A stretch of 64,000 nucleotides of DNA, taken from NCBI GenBank assembly GCA_003693705.1, contig RBZT01000146.1:1-64000 (forward strand), given 5' to 3'. The notes below the pieces were generated by a model. The model was given only the letters and a program-made list of their open reading frames with translations. It searched no databases and was not told where the DNA came from. The position numbers and the translations under genes are program-made. How positions within the stretch are numbered: the stretch's first letter is position 1; every line of letters starts with the position of its first letter. This DNA is from Polymyxa betae A26-41. Lineage: Eukaryota > Protista > Endomyxa: Phytomyxea. This document shows, piece by piece, positions 1,912 through 62,292 of this stretch.

Positions 1912-3197
1912 ATGGAGTCCTTCAACGATGCCGAGGATCGCGTGATATTGGCTGCTGCACAAACATTGTTCGAGATGATAGTAGCTGTAGCCGGTGATGA
2001 TGGAAGACGCCATCGACGTCCTAGACAGATTGAAAAGGCAACCGTTCGCAACAACACTTGGGAAAATGTCGAAGCAGGGCCCAACGACGGATGGTATCGC
2101 GCGAATCTACAGGTGAATCGGGCGACGTTCAACCAAATTGTGGAAATGATCGAAGATTACGCCATTAGCGCTGAAATCCAAATGCCTGCTGCTAACGCTT
2201 ACGTTGATCTACGAAAGCAAGTTGCAATGACGCTGAAGTATCTTGCTCAAGAATCAGGATTTCAAGACACGGCAACAATCTTTGGGGTTGTAAGTAAAGC
2301 AACGACGATAAGGGCGATCAATAGAATTTTAGACATTTTGTATACTCTATCTCCTTCGGTCATCAGGTATAGGTTTAATTCCGAGTTTTAATCGTCTTTG
2401 AATAAAATCCATAGTTTTCCTAAAACCGAAGAAAAATGGAAAGAGATAATGGAAGGATTCTACCAAACGGAGAATTACCCTGGAGTCGTTGGGGTGGTTG
2501 ATGGCTCTCTTTTTGCAATTGAAAGGCCAACTGATTACGAAGGGTGCGTACTTTATTCGATGTTAAACACAAATCGTTCTTATGATCTTTTTCAGGTGGA
2601 TATGCAGGAAAGGGTTTGCTGCAGTTAATATGCAAGCGACGGTAGATCATAATGCCAAATTTATGGAATACTCTCTGCGACCAGGTTCGTCCAGTGACAA
2701 AAATCTCTGGTCGAAGTCCAGTCTAGGAAAGAATATCCAATCGATTCTTCCGCCTACAACGCATCTATTAGGAGATGCCGGATACACGATTTCGGAATAT
2801 TTGATGATTCCGTATCCCATCACCAACGACATGTCGGAGTCCGACAGACAGTACAATAGCTACCACTCAAGAACTCGCATTACTGTAGAGCGAGCATTCG
2901 GATTGTTGAAAGGTAGATGGCGCATTTTGAAAAAGAAACCAGTGAGTCAGCCACGCTAAGCTTATTATATCTTCATGCATGAAGCTACCATTGTGCCGGA
3001 ATATGGTCATGGTATGCACTGAATAGTCCCTCACTCCATTGCTGAAATGCACTAGCTCGAAGACACCATACAAAAGCACGAAAAATAATCAAAGTTGTTT
3101 AAACGGATCTTTGCAGAGAAACTAGTTTTTACGAGAGTGTTTGGCTCGAAAAACTGTAAAACGACGGTTTTGGCCTTGGTCGTTGCCAAGCGCACTC
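1912..3197 (+). mobile_element. PIF/Harbinger element: DDE transposase with two introns, 3'-damaged, and a Tourist-like right end
   Basis: Spliced product contains GVVGVVDGS, HLLGDAGY and YNSYHSRTRITVERAFGLLKGRWRIL (Harbinger DDE). Introns restore VIS|FPKT and YEG|WICRKG. There is a premature stop at 2959. A candidate terminus GCCAAGCGCACTC|TAA lies at 3185-3200. Confidence 0.85.
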
Positions 3198-3352
3198 TAA
3201 CATTCAAAAAAACTTCTTAAATAAAAAAGATTGTGAAGGCCGGTATTTGAAACCAAATGAAGACTTTGTGGATAGATGACATAGCACGATACTTTATGAA
3301 TTACTGGAAAAAAATTATAGAGGACGTATAGGTAACCCAAGGGCCAACGACT

Positions 3353-5440
3353 TCAAGGATTTTTTGATGATCTGTATAAAGCCTGATAAGCAGCTGCAGT
3401 AAATAAATATGCTGGTCCTGTCTTAGCCAATGCTGGTAAAATGCCTTTATAAAGACCTTGTAATCCCTCACGCTGAACTATAGTATTGGCAATATGTGAC
3501 ATAGAGCGTAATGGTTGCTTTTGTAATAATCCTATCTGCATACATCGTGATATAGTACGAGCTGGATATGTTGCTATCAAACTTGTCATAAAACTTAATA
3601 ATCCACCTAATTCGGGTCGAAATATTTGTGTCAGATGTGGCTCAGTCAATAAATGCATTGATATAAATGTTGTAGCGCCCTAAAACCAATACAGTAAGTA
3701 GCATGGGATGGCATGCAATATGGGACATACGAGGACATGGGGCAGTACACCCCGGGACAGGCCCGGTATAAGTCCATGGATCCGGACAGAGTTCCATAGG
3801 TAGCGAGAGATGCCGCCGGGCGCCGTACTGGCCGCCATCTGGGTCTGAGCAACATCTAACGGATAGGTAATGAGTGTTGCGAGTCCGGTGGCCATGATTA
3901 GAGAGGAATACTGTCCCTGAGTGAGATGGTCATGATTACAGGTTATGAACTGGATATATGCATAAGGTAATAAGCGAGCTGTTAAGACAGATAATAAGAG
4001 CGGTATTACAGATCATTTGTTATATACACATGACATACCTAGATTAGCTGAATGTCCTTTATATAACTGTTTAGTTATATTATGAGAGTTTCCATTAACC
4101 TGCTGTCTAATCTGTAATGTCTCTATAGGTCCAATTACAGTACGTCCAATAGCAGTAGCAATGAATGCAGGTATTAGATTTGGATATTGACAGTGACGAT
4201 CTTGATTTCGACATGTAAATAATAGACCAATTGATTCAAATCCAGGTAATAATGATACAGCCCAATACATATCAGATGTATGGTCAGCATGTACAGATAC
4301 TTTTCTATGTCCATCATCTATATAATATGCAGTACCATATCGAAATTGGGCCAGTAGCCAATCTAGAATAGGTACAGAATGATTATGATGTGTGGACTTA
4401 GTCTCTGGCCTGATTTTCAACTCAATACATGTTGTGAATAATGGCTGACCATTGCGACATATTTGTACCAACTGCTGATTCATACCCAAATAGAACATTA
4501 AATAACGATCATGAACTGAGACATGATCATTACGAACTCGATCTATATTGATATTGGCCTGTGCTTCCATACTCTCAATATATTCGTTAGCCATTAATTC
4601 CTCATCTCGACTACGACAATATGCAATAAGATTCTGTATGAAGGCCAGATTCAGCTGTTCATGCCCTAATAAGATATCACTCTCATCTAATAATGGAGAG
4701 ATGCCCATCTTCAATATAGTAGATATAACAGCTTGAGCTCGTGATAGATCATCATTGAAATGATTAGGTTTAGATACAGGTAGACTAGATGAAGAAATAC
4801 ATTTCAATAACATGAGATATAAACGACCATCTTGCAGGTCTGTACTGAAATTTGTCATTCGAACTGATGTCGCTGACAATCTATCATTAACCCAGTTAAT
4901 AACCAACTGCTTATGTTCATCTAATGATTGCTTCTGTCTTGGAGATCGGTTTAATCCAGTACGTATTCGTAATTGTCGATCTAGAAGTTGCCATAGTAGA
5001 CCTAGAACTAGACTGACATGATGTCTGGCATCAATTAGATCCTTATCTCCAATATTGACCACAACTAATCCCATATTGACAGCTGCATCAATATATAAAC
5101 GCTGATTGGCCTGCATTTCGAATGTGTTCAATGGCCTTCCTTTCATCTTTGTACTGATAATCTTATGTAATGGAATACTATCAGGTGCAATTGATCTAAT
5201 AAATGCACAGTGAAGAACACCATCACATACTTTATCCAGTAGATCAATATCATCAATGCGAATAGGTAATAAATCAGCAACTAGGTCATCATGTGCTAAC
5301 TCATGGTTCAAATGTCGTGCTAGACCTTTAATCTCAGCAGAGACCAGATCCTGTTTCTGGGGTTTATCAGACTTTGGAGAACCAGAGACTAGTTTCTGTT
5401 CTAACTCGGTAATTAGACCGACATGGTCAGATAACGACAT
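3353..5440 (-). CDS. Fusion protein: fimbrin-like tandem CH actin-binding domain + unknown linker + mitochondrial carrier (SLC25) domain; 3 exons, 658 aa
   Basis: Exons 5440-4039, 3978-3731 and 3679-3353 total 1977 nt, with GT-AG introns of 60 and 51 nt. CH motifs: DGVLHCAFI, VVNIGDKDL...LVLGLLWQL, NFSTDLQDG. Carrier repeats: PIETLQIRQQ...LYKGHSANLARLLPYAYIQF; YPLDVAQTQM; YPARTISRCMQ...REGLQGLYKGILPALAKTGP. Confidence 0.85.
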
Positions 5441-19666: not shown

Positions 19667-20750
19667 TGGGGAATGTGAAGATATTTGTAATATGGGGAAA
19701 TAGTTGATGTGAAATATATTGAAGATCAAGGTCAATTGACCCGTTCTATTGACCTTTATATACAGATATAATGTTACATATTGATAGATAGGTAATTCAT
19801 TTTCAGTATGGGAATGAGTTAGAGTAAGAGTAAGAACTATAACGAGTATGTAAGACCCAAATACATCGTTCTAATGGGAATTTGGCAAAATACATTCGTT
19901 GCATGTACGTATAAATATTGTAAGAGCACGCTTTGACAAATTCCAGATCGTTTGGATGCAAAAAAACACAAAAATGATAGTCCGCAATGATTATTTTCTA
20001 TTGAGCTTGAAAAAGCGCCATTCGTTGGTAGTATGAGACAGCAATTCTTCTAGAGTTTGACGGTCATGCATGGCTCCTTGCACAGGTATTGTGCGGCATA
20101 CCATCCTGTTGCTAGGACAAGAAAGTCTGCAACATCGCCGTCATCATCATCGATGCCGCAAGCTTCAAAATTTCCAGAGAAGACAGCAGAGCCTTATTTA
20201 AAGTATCCGCCCAAATACTTAGAGCTGGAAATCGTATTTTGCAGAAAATCTTGCAAAAGGTCTCCAAACACGTTCCTTTTTAAAGAGAAAAAACAATTTT
20301 GCAAAATCTTTCCCGGAAGTTTGCTAAATTGCATGTATCCAAATTCGTCAGGTTTCTCAATTTGCTTCCGATTTGTGTGTCCCGCAAAATTGGCGTTTTC
20401 GTGACTTTTGCCTTTTGGAAGTCTTCCAAAAAACAATAGCGGAACGGACTTGTGCGTACTCATTGTGGAGATTCTGAACGCCACAATATTTCCTTTACGA
20501 TCAATATGCATGGACGTTTTCTTTTGCGGTGGAGATGGTAGAGTGTAGATATACAGTATAGAATTTCAAACGTGCTACTGTATCCTTGAAGCAAGATATG
20601 AATGTAAAATTTTGTTAAATTTTGAATCTAATCAGAGAAAGCCATTTCTAGTTAAAATAGATAGATACAGTGGTCAGCTGAAAGTGAAGATGATGAAAGG
20701 CTGAGATGACTTCTTTCTCGTTTTGAAGCCTTGAATTTTTGGGGATTTCA

Positions 20751-20763
20751 TTAGGGTTTAGGG
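20751..20763 (+). repeat. Telomere-like TTAGGGTTTAGGG
   Basis: Read directly; lies in the left part of the TE island. Confidence 0.55.
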
Positions 20764-21083
20764 TTTGATCTTGTTTTTTATTGGTTGGCCCATTTGTCGG
20801 CGGTGAAGATTTGATTTTTTTTTATTTTCCACTTTAAGGTTGTTTGGGAATCGCCGAAAAAATATACGGGCTGCATCACTTTTGAAAAAGAAATCAAGAT
20901 CGGATAACAGGAAATCATTGGTCTTCAAATGCCGTGCCAATAAGGCACATGACCCCATCAAAAAGGAGGAGCAGACGGTTAGCTTCCCCCCAATTTCAGG
21001 GACACACTCTGAAAGCAGCGTGGTAGTGCGAGATCTCGGGGAATAGAAGGCACCTTGGAGGATGTAGATGAGCTTGCTCTCCC

Positions 21084-21365
21084 TGTCATGACCTTGTCCC
21101 GACTTTGATTCACGATACAGAAAATATCTTCTGTGACTGTTTACATTTATATCTTTTCACTTAATACAGCTTTGCCTATATCGGACTGAAGGCCCGGAAC
21201 AGCCTTCAGTCCGATCAACGTGCTAATCTCGTTCGTCTCGTCTCGTCTTCTAGCATCCTATTCGTCTAACCTCCCTTCTACCTTTCTCTTCCAACTCTCT
21301 CCTATCTTCTCTTGATTACTTATCGATCTCTTTATTCCTTATTTAGCGTGTGTTAGTTCATAACA
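21084..21365. mobile_element. Solo LTR (282 bp) with 5-bp TSD CTCCC
   Basis: Begins TGTCATGA and ends TCATAACA (7/8 inverted). CTCCC occurs at 21079-21083 and 21366-21370. An internal perfect 14-bp hairpin spans 21180-21215. Confidence 0.9.
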
Positions 21366-21366
21366 C

Positions 21367-21510
21367 TCCCTACCGACCCCGCCTGTAACAGCAGAGCGGG
21401 CTTAGGGAAACCCCGCAATGACGCTGTGGTGACAGTCGGGTTAGCCCGACCGGTCATCGGCATCAGGGCGGAGGTCGGGGTTGGACGGGCCCTACGCCCG
21501 GCCTTCCAAC
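21367..21510 (+). ncRNA. Structured RNA element (three-way junction, kink-turn, possible kissing loop) upstream of LINE ORF1
   Basis: Stems: 21373-85/21464-78; ACAGC/GCTGT plus GCGGG/CCCGC flanking a K-turn; GGTGAC/GTCATC plus GTCGGG/CCCGAC; GTTGGA/TCCAAC plus CGGGC/GCCCG. Confidence 0.6.
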
Positions 21511-21569
21511 AACACACAGAGCAGAATTTTTTATGTACATAGTTTGCTATGTAACATACCTCAGACTCA

Positions 21570-23415
21570 ATGAATTTTCATACAACGATTGCGCAAGCAA
21601 ATCCCTCAACAGTCAATTCAAAAGAAACTTACTCGGATCACGGAGATCACAGAACAGATATCCCTCAATCTCCTCATAACAGTAATATCACTGCCACAGC
21701 ATCCGGCAAATGTGCGGAAATGACCGACCCACGATAGACGACAGAATAGACCGCGTTCATTTTATCCCCTCGATGAACAAACGACCACGGTCCACCAGCC
21801 CGACAATGCCTGCCCGAACGAAGAAGGCTGCAAAGGCAGAAGCACCCAGTTTCAAGAAGGCAGCGTCCCAAAATCTAACGCTTGCAGCACTCAACAACAG
21901 CCTGGTCCCAAAATACGAAGAACGAACCGAAAAGAATCATCATAGAGTGGTGATAAAAGCGCAAATGTTAGACTGCAAAATGCTAAAAGGAGATGCTGCA
22001 TGCTGTAGTCATCAACAATTTGAGCAGCACTGCTCGCTTTCTGAAAAACTACGACTTTCGAAACATGACAGCTGATGATGAAGACATTATACTACGCGAT
22101 TTATTGGCAGATCATAACTTGAGACAACAACATCAACTACAGGGCATTATCTACAAATCAAAAAAGCAGTAGAAGAATTTTTAGAATCATAATTTTCCCA
22201 CATCATCCCGCCAAATCTGATGAAGACCGAACCCTGGCTGTTTCGAACTTCCAGAAATTATGGTCGATTCTTTCGAATCAACAATCCGCGCCATTTGCTC
22301 ACTTGAAAACCCGTCAAAATTCATCAAACTTATTGCGAAAAACGTTTACATAATCGTTTTCAATAGCAAAGAGGAAGAAACTAGAGCCTTATAAAAAATC
22401 CAGATCTACCAAAATCTCTTCACTGTTGCCAAACCAAAGGAGCGAATTGCAAATATATGTCAAACCTGCAAAACAATCGAATGCGAGCAGAAAAATCGAT
22501 GTTGCAATCACCTATGCGGAGAATGTGGAGAAAGCCATCGTATTTCCGCTTGCACGGAAGATCGGGAAAAAACAATATATATGTGCGTGGTCTGCTACAA
22601 CGCAGGCCAGTACTTTACCAAATGGCCGCTTGTCCATTACAGTTGATACACTACCGGGCGACGAGAATGAGAATACACCTAAAACACCAAAAACATAGAC
22701 AAAAACATAGACGACAAAATACAGCTCCTTCATTCCTTACGAATAATATGCCCATTGAAAATTCTCCAATGGAACGCTTGCTCGCTGAACGCCGAAAAAG
22801 ATCACAACTCGAACTCCTGGCTTCCCAAAGCGAATATGACATAAATACTTAAGACGACCAGGGGGTCGGAAGACCAATTACAAAGAGAGACGAATTTGAG
22901 ACGAAATAGACACGTGTTGAGAGAGAGACAAAGAACTCTAGTTGTATTATTAGAAAGGAGAAGCGGTTGCGGTGTCCGCAGAGAGGTTAGGGGGAACCTC
23001 ATATATCAGTAGCAGAATAAACAATTAAAAAGTAAAAATTAAAACTTCGCGTCACAATACTTTGTTTTTCTGAAATGGGAAACTATAGGAAAATTCGAGG
23101 CTTTCAGATCTACTATCATAGCAACGTTGACACACAAAGTGCAATTTTCTGGAGGGATGGTCTCAAGATTAAGAAAAATTCAGACAGAATTTGGTTGCAA
23201 CATGAGCGAAAATTGACAGAGTGTATAAATATCAACAGCGAACTTCTCATAATACACACATATATAGCTCCAGACAGAACCCATAGAGCCAGAAAAAAAT
23301 ATTGGCAAGACGTTCTAATATTCATTGAAGAGTGGTGCAATGAAAAATCGGTGCATAAAACGATCATTACTGGAGACTTGAATACACGCGATAAAAGGCT
23401 CGGAATCAATCATAA
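21570..23415 (+). mobile_element. Degenerate non-LTR retrotransposon (LINE): frameshifted ORF1 and truncated APE endonuclease
   Basis: ORF 23075-23461 contains IIHTYIAP...KTIITGDLNTR (APE GDxN motif). Broken ORF fragments run 21570-22850. RT is absent (truncated). Confidence 0.7.
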
Positions 23416-59659: not shown

Positions 59660-62292
59660 TTATTTCTTCAAGGGGTTCAGGCTGGCAGCCATAATAGCAG
59701 CGACGAATGTCATAATCTGCAAAGTATAAATTTTTCCGGTGCCAATACGAAGTAAGAAACGTACCATCTTGTCTTTAATTTCAACGATGTCTTCAGGCAA
59801 AAGGAAGATGATACTTCCGATCTTACGAGCAACAGATATGGCATATCGAGCATTGAGAAGCTGATCGTCTTTCGTCTGCGCAGGAGTAACAAGCTATCAA
59901 AACAACTTAGTAAAAAGAAGACATTAGTGACCTCGGGTCTCACCTCCCAGTTGATGATGCGGTTCTCAACAGCATACAACAGATCGAAAAAGAACTCGGA
60001 CGTTTTTAGGGACGGGTCCTTGAATGATTGCATGCGAGTTGACCTAGCAGCATTGGCAACCTGAATGATCATTTGTTTGAGTAAACGCAACGCGGATTGT
60101 AATGATCAAACCTTATCATTGGCCCATTGAATGATCTTCTCGTCGGACATGACAACGCCGCCTCCAAGTTGCGTTAAGAATTTAATGATATGGCGACGCA
60201 TCAGTTGCCTGATCATGAGCTGTCTTAGAGCAAATTCGTACATAAAAAAAGGGGACACATACCAGGTGAGGGCCAGAACAAGTTTCCTGTTTCCATCAAC
60301 GATATCCGTTCCGCCAATACCGACCAAGCTGAATTTCAATTGCTTCCCAAGCACAATTACATAGTTCGCATTGCTGATCCGCTTAAACCTTGGATGCAAT
60401 ATGAGCATACGCTTATTCTCTGGCAGCATAGCACACTCACTTGTTACTTGGCTTTTTCTCAACCTTGCTCCAATCCACAATTCCGGGTTCAATGTGGTCA
60501 ATCACTAAGACAGAGAATGGATATGAATGGATTATAATCGTTGAACAGCTACCTTTAAGAAGGACGAGACCATCCTTGCAATCCTCGTAAAGAGCGTTTA
60601 CGTAGACTTCGTGCAGGCCGAGAGTATTAATCCACATTCGGAAAGCTATAGTTATTTTCAGTGAAAACAGAGCAGAAAATGACACAGAATCAAACCTCTT
60701 TCTTCTCGGCTGTCACCAAAGTCGTCATCCATCATTCCTGCTAACTCCATTGCCTGCAAATGTGCTTTAGAAACCGCGACTTAAGTTCGAACAACAACAA
60801 GACCTCTTCCTCAGTCAGAGGGTCCAATCCTGGGCAAGTGTTGAAAATTGAGGCAGTAAACGCCAAGTTTAATCGAGCATTGCCCTTAACAATGTCTCGA
60901 GCCTATGTCATATGTTAGTTCGACAATTATCCAGAACATTATGGTAATATGAGTTGAGTGGCACAGAACCTGAATGAAAGCATGAATGTCAAGCTTCTCT
61001 GCATTGCGAAGGACTCGGTCGGCTCTCTTGGTTAGATCCTTTTCTTCCAGCGCCGATTTGTCACAGCGTTGAGGTGCGATTTGATTGAGCAAGACTGTGT
61101 ACGCTTCAGAGTCCTAGACAATGTTATAAGACATGCAACAAATGTTATGGAACAATATCAAACCTTCACATCAGTAGCGAAGTTCGTGATGCGTTTAGAA
61201 AAGCCAGCGTTTTTTAGATGGTAGTTGAACCAACGAATCAAAAGTTGATCGGGAGGAAGTTTCAACAAATCAGCAAGCTCTTCGCCCTCTTCAAGCAGAC
61301 GAACCAGCTCTGGATGGTTCTTCAGGTTGATCGTGTTCAAGAGTTGCAATTTGACTAAATGCGCTTCAGCTATCAACCGCTAGCGATATCAGAATCAGCG
61401 TTACCGAGCTGCCACACCAGACCAAGAACAAGATGCGGGTGCTTATCACCGCTAGCAAGCTCACTGGCTCCCAAGTTCACTGTCTGGATACCAATAGCTT
61501 TAGCTGAAGCAATCACCAAGTTAAGGTTCTCATTGATCTGTTCATAGACTGCTCAGGTACAGCTCTTCAAAGATGACCCATGATCTAACCTGGAACAGAG
61601 AAAGAGGTTTGTTGTTCTTTTGAAGGTTCAGAGCACGAACATCAATGGTGTCTTTGACAGCTTTGTTAATGAATTTTGAAAGAAGAACACCATCGTTGAC
61701 TTTCTTCGCCAGCTCCTGGCCGTTAACATCGATGGGCAACAGATATCTGTTTAAAGTTTAGAATCATCGATCCGTTTGAGATCCGTCGTACTTGAGATCT
61801 GAGTCCTCTCCAAGAACCTGGTTGATATGTAAAGCGAAAGCAGTCATTTCTTCTTGTGAGAACGAGTGAACACCACCTGCATGGCCTTGAACTTGAATCA
61901 GCTCTTTCTGCTTCTCATAAACCTAATGAAATTTCAGTTTCAAGCAGATATGAGCGAACTCCATTTGATCAACCTTGGCAAAGCCAGCAGCACCAGCTGT
62001 TTTCCCTGTCCGAATCGAAGAAATGATAGCCAGAAACTCATTGAATTCGATAGTTCCAGATCTATCAGTATCAACCTAGATCCAGCATTGGATTAGAGCT
62101 TCGTCAACGTTTAAGTAAAAGCCCAACTTCGGAGATCAATGTCTTCAGCTGAGAAGCATCCTTGAACTCGTTGAGATTTCGGAGGACAGTCTCAAGCTCA
62201 AGAACGTCAATAGAGCCGTTGCCGTTTGTGTCGAATGACGCAAACTCATGGTGGAATTGTTGTAGCTCTGCAGGGGAGAAGGTGAGAGCCAT
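59660..62292 (-). CDS. Fimbrin/plastin (EF-hands + four CH domains)
   Basis: EF-hand DTNGNGSID; [58 protein letters not shown]. Confidence 0.95.

Follow-up and report, generated by a model that had tools for sequence, protein, structure and literature searches.

A fimbrin-type CH pair fused to a mitochondrial-carrier domain in two plasmodiophorid genera: a candidate outer-membrane anchor for F-actin

We found that a single gene of Polymyxa betae encodes, in one chain of 658 aa, a tandem pair of CH domains of fimbrin type, a linker and an SLC25 carrier domain, and that the same fusion is present in Plasmodiophora brassicae. Judged from its sequence, the protein is best read as a nucleotide-binding anchor in the outer membrane by which mitochondria would be tied to F-actin, a reading to which we give a probability of about 0.4. 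The gene lies on the minus strand of the window, the 64,000-nucleotide stretch analysed here (positions 1 to 64,000 of contig RBZT01000146.1). The minus-strand ORF 5440-4013 is stop-free over 475 aa; Pfam recognises two CH domains in it (E 8e-25) and, at 421-456, the beginning of Mito_carr, and also finds Mito_carr in exons 2 and 3, giving one repeat per exon (Table 1). Removal of two GT..AG introns yields the stop-free 658-aa protein. The earlier note had proposed this frame, with two CH domains, a linker and the first carrier repeat, and the two canonical introns that add repeats 2 and 3; the ORF and Pfam confirm the former, and both intron joints were seen spliced in RNA contigs. The CH half is single-copy within the P. 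betae genome. The GC content of the gene is 53% in exon 2 and 37% in exons 1 and 3, while that of the P. brassicae gene is 69% throughout.

Table 1. Features of the fusion gene and of the canonical fimbrin gene, in positions of the window
Feature	Position	Strand	Evidence
Exon 1: start codon, CH1, CH2, linker, carrier repeat 1 to start of H2	4039..5440	-	ORF, Pfam, RNA contigs
CH1 (aa 35-158), fimbrin ABD1 type	4967..5338	-	Structure matches, tree, alignment
CH2 (aa 172-276)	4613..4927	-	Pfam, ortholog alignment
Exitron within CH1, 53 nt, GT..AG	5178..5230	-	RNA contigs
Linker (aa 277-418)	4187..4612	-	Conserved patch aa 360-406 at 4363-4223
SLC25 carrier domain (aa 419-652), three exons	3374..4186	-	Pfam, alignment
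Intron 1, 60 nt, phase 1	3979..4038	-	RNA contigs; position matches P. brassicae
Exon 2: H2 to start of H4	3731..3978	-	Pfam, RNA contigs
Intron 2, 51 nt, phase 0	3680..3730	-	RNA contigs; position matches P. brassicae and SLC25A42-like paralog
Exon 3: H4 to H6 and stop codon	3353..3679	-	Pfam, RNA contigs
3' UTR, poly(A) at about 3271	3271..3352	-	RNA contig loose end, run X4
Canonical fimbrin, 620 aa, EF-hand region and four CH domains, 15 short introns	59661..62292	-	Hand-built model

A one-to-one ortholog of 653 aa with an identical CH-CH-linker-SLC25 layout was recovered from P. brassicae using a profile in which the three exons were entered as separate rows (E 5e-47, 33% identity, 86% of exon 1). 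Its cluster holds two 653-aa P. brassicae proteins, XXQ39150.1 and SPR01341.1 (UniRef A0A3P3YMA1), and Pfam assigns it two CH domains and three Mito_carr repeats, the carrier stretches scoring 112-113 bits. For both halves of the ortholog the best match in P. betae is the fusion locus. Both P. betae introns have a counterpart at the matching codon and in the same phase in P. brassicae, which has one extra intron in H1, and the first P. brassicae exon likewise spans CH1 into carrier helix 1. The ortholog in a second genus makes the case for the fusion stronger than the sequence available to the earlier note could. The identity between the two species is 59% in CH1, 33% in CH2, 22% in the linker and 35% in the carrier, making CH1 the best-conserved part between the genera (Fisher p 2e-4 and 2e-5). 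Since the fusion is common to both genera, it is, on these gene sequences, older than the Polymyxa/Plasmodiophora split, and it was retained while the carrier drifted to 35% identity; its conservation is sampled in these two genera.

The databases name the P. brassicae proteins only as 'CH domain-containing protein' or leave them unnamed, so that the architecture is present, unremarked, in the public P. brassicae annotation. A literature search run without most subscription journals found no CH-SLC25 fusion in papers, in keeping with the earlier note, to whose author no CH-CH-SLC25 architecture was known. Single-sequence homolog searches with regions 275-467 and 30-280 of exon 1, which are of low sensitivity, returned no match, and metagenome scans gave no further relatives of the fusion; runs X13 and X14, considered as possible relatives, have a sequence identical to the P. 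betae locus. The P. brassicae gene is located 57 nt from a divergent gene and adjoins a PRELI-family gene. There is no synteny between the genera around the fusion: the PRELI neighbour is on another P. betae contig, and the peptidase neighbour of the ortholog was not found in P. betae with the query used.

Transcription of the fusion can be followed in public data, where 20 runs from eight studies contain all or part of the stretch. Single contigs in two of these studies (X3 and X4) are continuous from 5177 to 3294/3271 with both introns removed, one of them ending in a poly(A) tail at about 3271, and both are identical to the assembly. In a third study we found the intron 2 joint spliced and a piece across the border of CH2 and the linker. 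The splicing and the poly(A) tail indicate that the runs are RNA-derived, though their records carry no RNA label. Spliced contigs that span the CH domains, the linker and the carrier imply one shared transcript and exclude a mis-assembly. The earlier note had proposed looking for reads across 5440-3353; continuity was observed from 5177 to 3271, and the first 87 codons are joined to the rest through a splice bubble rather than by one long read, the contigs not being single molecules. None of the RNA contigs ends within the linker, as transcripts of two separate genes would (contigs cannot show starts), and none differs from the assembly. Together with the ortholog in the second genus, the contigs uphold one gene with one transcript.

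The RNA contigs also revealed a third GT..AG joint, absent from the earlier note, which removes 53 nt from the coding core of CH1. This splice shifts the frame, and the product stops after 74 aa. The exitron is spliced in about 40% of the P. betae RNA signal; the retained form amounts to ~62% and 61% in two runs, values back-calculated from bin depths that reproduce the neighbouring bin, contig depth being a rough measure. Its splice sites are absent in the P. brassicae ortholog, which makes the exitron Polymyxa-specific. It may be noise, a means of lowering the amount of protein, or splicing in an overlapping 3' UTR of the upstream gene, RAPTOR. RAPTOR ends at about 5577, 137 nt ahead of the fusion's start codon, and RNA contigs cross the gap (5577-5440, minus strand) unbroken, a RAPTOR contig running into exon 1; this continuity reflects either overlapping UTRs or read-through. 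On the other side of the gene, pieces of a PIF/Harbinger-type transposase (HTH_Tnp_4, DDE_Tnp_4) occupy 1894-2959 of the plus strand, and a spliced plus-strand transcript (2900-3243, with a 44-nt intron at ~3011-3054) ends near the poly(A) site of the fusion.

The CH pair has its best PDB matches among fimbrins, on the ABD1 side (E 4e-30), and groups with ABD1 sequences at 100/100 in the tree, in which the exact donor is not separated. The structure matches and the ABD1 clade bear out the fimbrin-type assignment made earlier. The fused pair is 32% identical to ABD1 and 24% to ABD2 of the P. betae fimbrin, an intact member of the parent family that lies 55 kb from the fusion in the same window and is not part of it. 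The ABD1 region of this canonical fimbrin contains five introns, whereas in neither species does a constitutive intron interrupt the more than 400 codons of the fusion's first exon, and the carrier part keeps two or three. An intronless CH part next to an intron-bearing carrier suggests that a retroposed copy was joined to a carrier gene, and the CH pair probably derives from fimbrin ABD1 in this way. The fusion and the P. betae fimbrin have a two-residue insertion in common, which was rejected as proof of the donor: it also occurs in three unrelated metagenome fimbrins. Like the ABD1 of S. pombe fimbrin (1RT8), T-plastin and the P. betae fimbrin, the fusion has CH1 and CH2 in tandem. With only two CH domains and no EF-hand, however, it falls outside the two-ABD definition of fimbrin/plastin; it lacks ABD2 and would therefore neither bundle filaments nor undergo ABD1/ABD2 auto-inhibition. 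From the P. betae fimbrin, to which it is ~33% identical, it differs further in having none of the five ABD1 introns and in being joined to a membrane protein. Another CH-containing gene, L035 (G000:C660, about 20158-23400, minus strand), has several CH domains together with a PH-like stretch and a long coiled coil.

Within ABD1 it is CH1 that engages actin. Known actin-contact residues are kept in the fused pair, as is the C-terminal actin site of CH1: F107 of P. betae and F105 of the ortholog align with F191 of T-plastin, a residue of the CH1 actin site whose mutation lowers bundling (PMC9478642). For plastin ABD1 in isolation, the affinity for F-actin is about 2.6 uM (bioRxiv 10.1101/2021.12.01.470822). 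The identity of fused CH1 to the P. betae fimbrin is 32-36%; between canonical fimbrins from distant groups it is 45-53%. Being further from fimbrin than distant fimbrins are from each other, CH1 may have changed its partner.

The linker is uneven in its conservation. A patch of ~47 aa just before H1 (aa 360-406) is conserved in the ortholog (z 6.8; 0/1000 shuffles), and the first half of the linker is not (z 1.8). The linker has no match in a representative set of 1.84 billion sequences, in the Atlas, in Pfam or in the PDB, and AlphaFold gave no usable fold, with a pLDDT of 34 for exon 1 and 36 for the linker. A weak match upstream of the carrier on C749 (E 0.001) was discarded as chance plus carrier repeat 1, partly in a 5' flank without an in-frame start. 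The linker may comprise a small folded unit carried by a flexible stalk.

The carrier domain retains the SLC25 fold, with three Mito_carr repeats and six predicted transmembrane helices, and over residues 400-653 of the ortholog the Atlas model aligns with carriers at TM scores of 0.84-0.90. The signature prolines on H1, H3 and H5 are kept (P438, P507 and P589; P422, P498 and P583 in the ortholog). At the matrix gate the sequence in both genera is E..Q, D..Q and R..S/G, which does not make up the Px[DE]xx[KR] network; of the 6 charges of this gate both fused carriers have 2, whereas 29 other P. betae carriers, modelled automatically for comparison, have 3-6. The cytoplasmic network [YF][DE]xx[KR] is not recognisable on H2 and H4 and is partial on H6. 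The binding-site residues R433, R469, G551, F555, R595 and K636 are kept. The equivalents of K30, R88, R246, R287 and G192 of the ADP/ATP carrier are present in both genera, with F for Y196, and 4 of the 5 phosphate-binding basic residues remain (residue roles from PMC7611774 and PMC10251735). At contact point II the glycine is no longer followed by an aliphatic residue (G-[IVLM]), the pair being G-A in P. betae and G-T in P. brassicae. The kept basic pocket probably still binds adenine nucleotide or a CoA-like ligand.

In the tree the fused carriers of the two species group together (100/99) within the set of AAC, APC, SLC25A42 and TPC (99/95). A bootstrap that had not fully settled gives no firm order inside this set and does not separate A42 from TPC (80/19). 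The labels of the P. betae paralogs rest on motifs. The nearest by identity is an SLC25A42-like paralog on C12 (31% and 28%), with which the fused carriers share the phase-0 intron 2 in H4 and a K at contact point III; the P. brassicae carrier scores slightly higher against TPC and AAC. The earlier note had likened the carrier to the CoA-carrier/Leu5/SLC25A16-A42 group: the nearest identity and the shared intron 2 agree with this, while the tree resolves only the nucleotide/cofactor clade. By its sequence the carrier belongs to that clade, closest to the SLC25A42-like paralog and without a firm subfamily. The SLC25A42/Leu5 group, TPC/SLC25A19 and SLC25A43/AIC are candidate subfamilies. An APC with EF-hands is encoded separately in P. 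betae (locus L056), and intact AAC-, APC-, SLC25A42- and TPC-like paralogs remain in the genome. Two closely related carriers in tandem on G000:C82 (L024 and L021), presumably folate/FAD-carrier-like by motif, have their acidic signature residues replaced.

In inner-membrane carriers both ends face the intermembrane space, from where the CH pair could not reach F-actin. A tether needs contact with F-actin and so requires a cytosol-facing membrane, a point absent from the earlier note. We propose that an intronless, probably retroposed copy of fimbrin ABD1 was inserted ahead of a duplicated nucleotide/cofactor carrier gene that had introns, and that both parents persist as intact copies. The carrier would no longer cycle as a tightly gated exchanger, and the protein would reside in the outer membrane of mitochondria, its N-terminus facing the cytosol as in other gate-less SLC25 proteins; for MTCH2 this orientation is implied in PMC12934571. 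The fusion would anchor a single low-affinity actin-binding domain; because one such domain cannot bundle filaments, attachment of the organelle to F-actin would depend on the avidity of many copies, and the kept basic pocket with its bound ligand could tune it. The loss of gate charges fits, but does not prove, an outer-membrane location: kept prolines with lost gate charges are the described pattern of the outer-membrane proteins MTCH1/2 and SLC25A46 (PMC7611774). The kept actin contacts and the lost gates, taken together, tentatively fit an outer-membrane anchor best. More doubtful is the stronger version, a one-chain organelle-actin tether in a cytosol-facing membrane whose nucleotide pocket would control attachment by energy or cofactor status. 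The roughly 40% of the P. betae RNA signal in which CH1 is destroyed counts against the tether reading, and the six helices with a nucleotide-type pocket argue for ligand binding or transport.

The protein may instead have stayed in the inner membrane, the default location of SLC25 proteins, as a weakly gated carrier that handles adenine nucleotide, CoA or thiamine pyrophosphate by uniport or by slow import. In the intermembrane space the CH pair would then be a regulatory or scaffold domain, like the EF-hands of APC and AGC, with a partner other than actin. We consider this rather unlikely. In its favour, both genera keep the basic residues, the glycine and the aromatic of the ADP/ATP carrier pocket, uniport is possible with weak networks (PMC7611774), and CH1 moved away from fimbrin and was then held constant. 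Yet the matrix gate has lost every canonical salt bridge, and an inner-membrane carrier without gates would risk leak; the intact AAC-, APC-, SLC25A42- and TPC-like paralogs are already present; a carrier with G-A at contact point II showed no ATP uptake (PMC12343136); and the actin-contact residues are kept.

An actin tether, with or without transport, could also sit on another cytosol-facing organelle, such as a peroxisome or microbody. With the CH pair in the cytosol, such a location would agree with the retention of the pocket as well as of the actin site, but the fused carriers stand apart from the models on C892 and C594, which by motif we take to be of peroxisomal type, and their grouping with AAC/APC/A42/TPC at 99/95 makes it unlikely. 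The peroxisomal carrier PMP34/SLC25A17 likewise has a weak matrix network (PMC7611774).

Still less probable is one gene whose halves act apart, through cleavage of the linker, a shorter transcript or a downstream start that gives a carrier without CH1. It would agree with the poor conservation of the first half of the linker and with an in-frame ATG at 5253 in the exitron form, from which a product lacking most of the first half of CH1 could be made; against it stand the retention of the fusion across two genera at 35% carrier identity, the absence of the exitron sites from the ortholog and the lack of RNA contigs ending inside the linker, contigs being blind to starts. A mis-assembly or two adjacent genes, as a draft assembly and the continuation of the RAPTOR RNA contig into exon 1 might suggest, is refuted by the single stop-free frame across the junction, the presence of all or part of the stretch in eight studies, RNA contigs identical to the assembly and an ortholog with the same single-exon CH-to-H1 junction.

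To our knowledge, the known SLC25 extensions are EF-hand domains, and the known gate-less members are few. The putative outer-membrane anchor shares with APC/SCaMC (SLC25A23-25) and the AGC aralar/citrin (SLC25A12/13) a large soluble domain ahead of the carrier, and APC itself arose by fusion of a soluble domain to a carrier (PMC6283063); it differs from them in having CH-CH and a linker instead of EF-hands and in the loss of its gates. With MTCH1/2 and SLC25A46/Ugo1 it has in common the kept signature prolines, the lost gate charges and a shortened matrix loop in repeat 1. Unlike these proteins, it would have a separate origin in the nucleotide/cofactor clade, keeps its pocket and carries a domain of actin-binding type, and its location is a predicted one. 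MTCH lost a helix, whereas the fusion keeps six, and both MTCH and SLC25A46 are far more diverged. The proposed role resembles that of the mitochondrion-actin anchor FHL2/TRAK, by which mitochondria are held on F-actin (PMC8340551); that anchor uses recruited adaptor proteins, whereas here a domain of actin-binding type and a membrane domain are in one chain.

If the protein is such a one-chain tether, the fusion would be an independent exit of an SLC25 protein from transport and would add a third class of SLC25 N-terminal domain. It would be a natural protein in which gating is separated from binding, and with it the gate-strength model of carriers could be tested directly, as could the way in which carriers are re-routed to the outer membrane. 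P. betae, a vector of beet viruses, and P. brassicae, the agent of clubroot, are both root parasites, and the fusion would suggest that plasmodiophorid crop parasites, a group with little-known cell biology, position their organelles by a lineage-specific mechanism.
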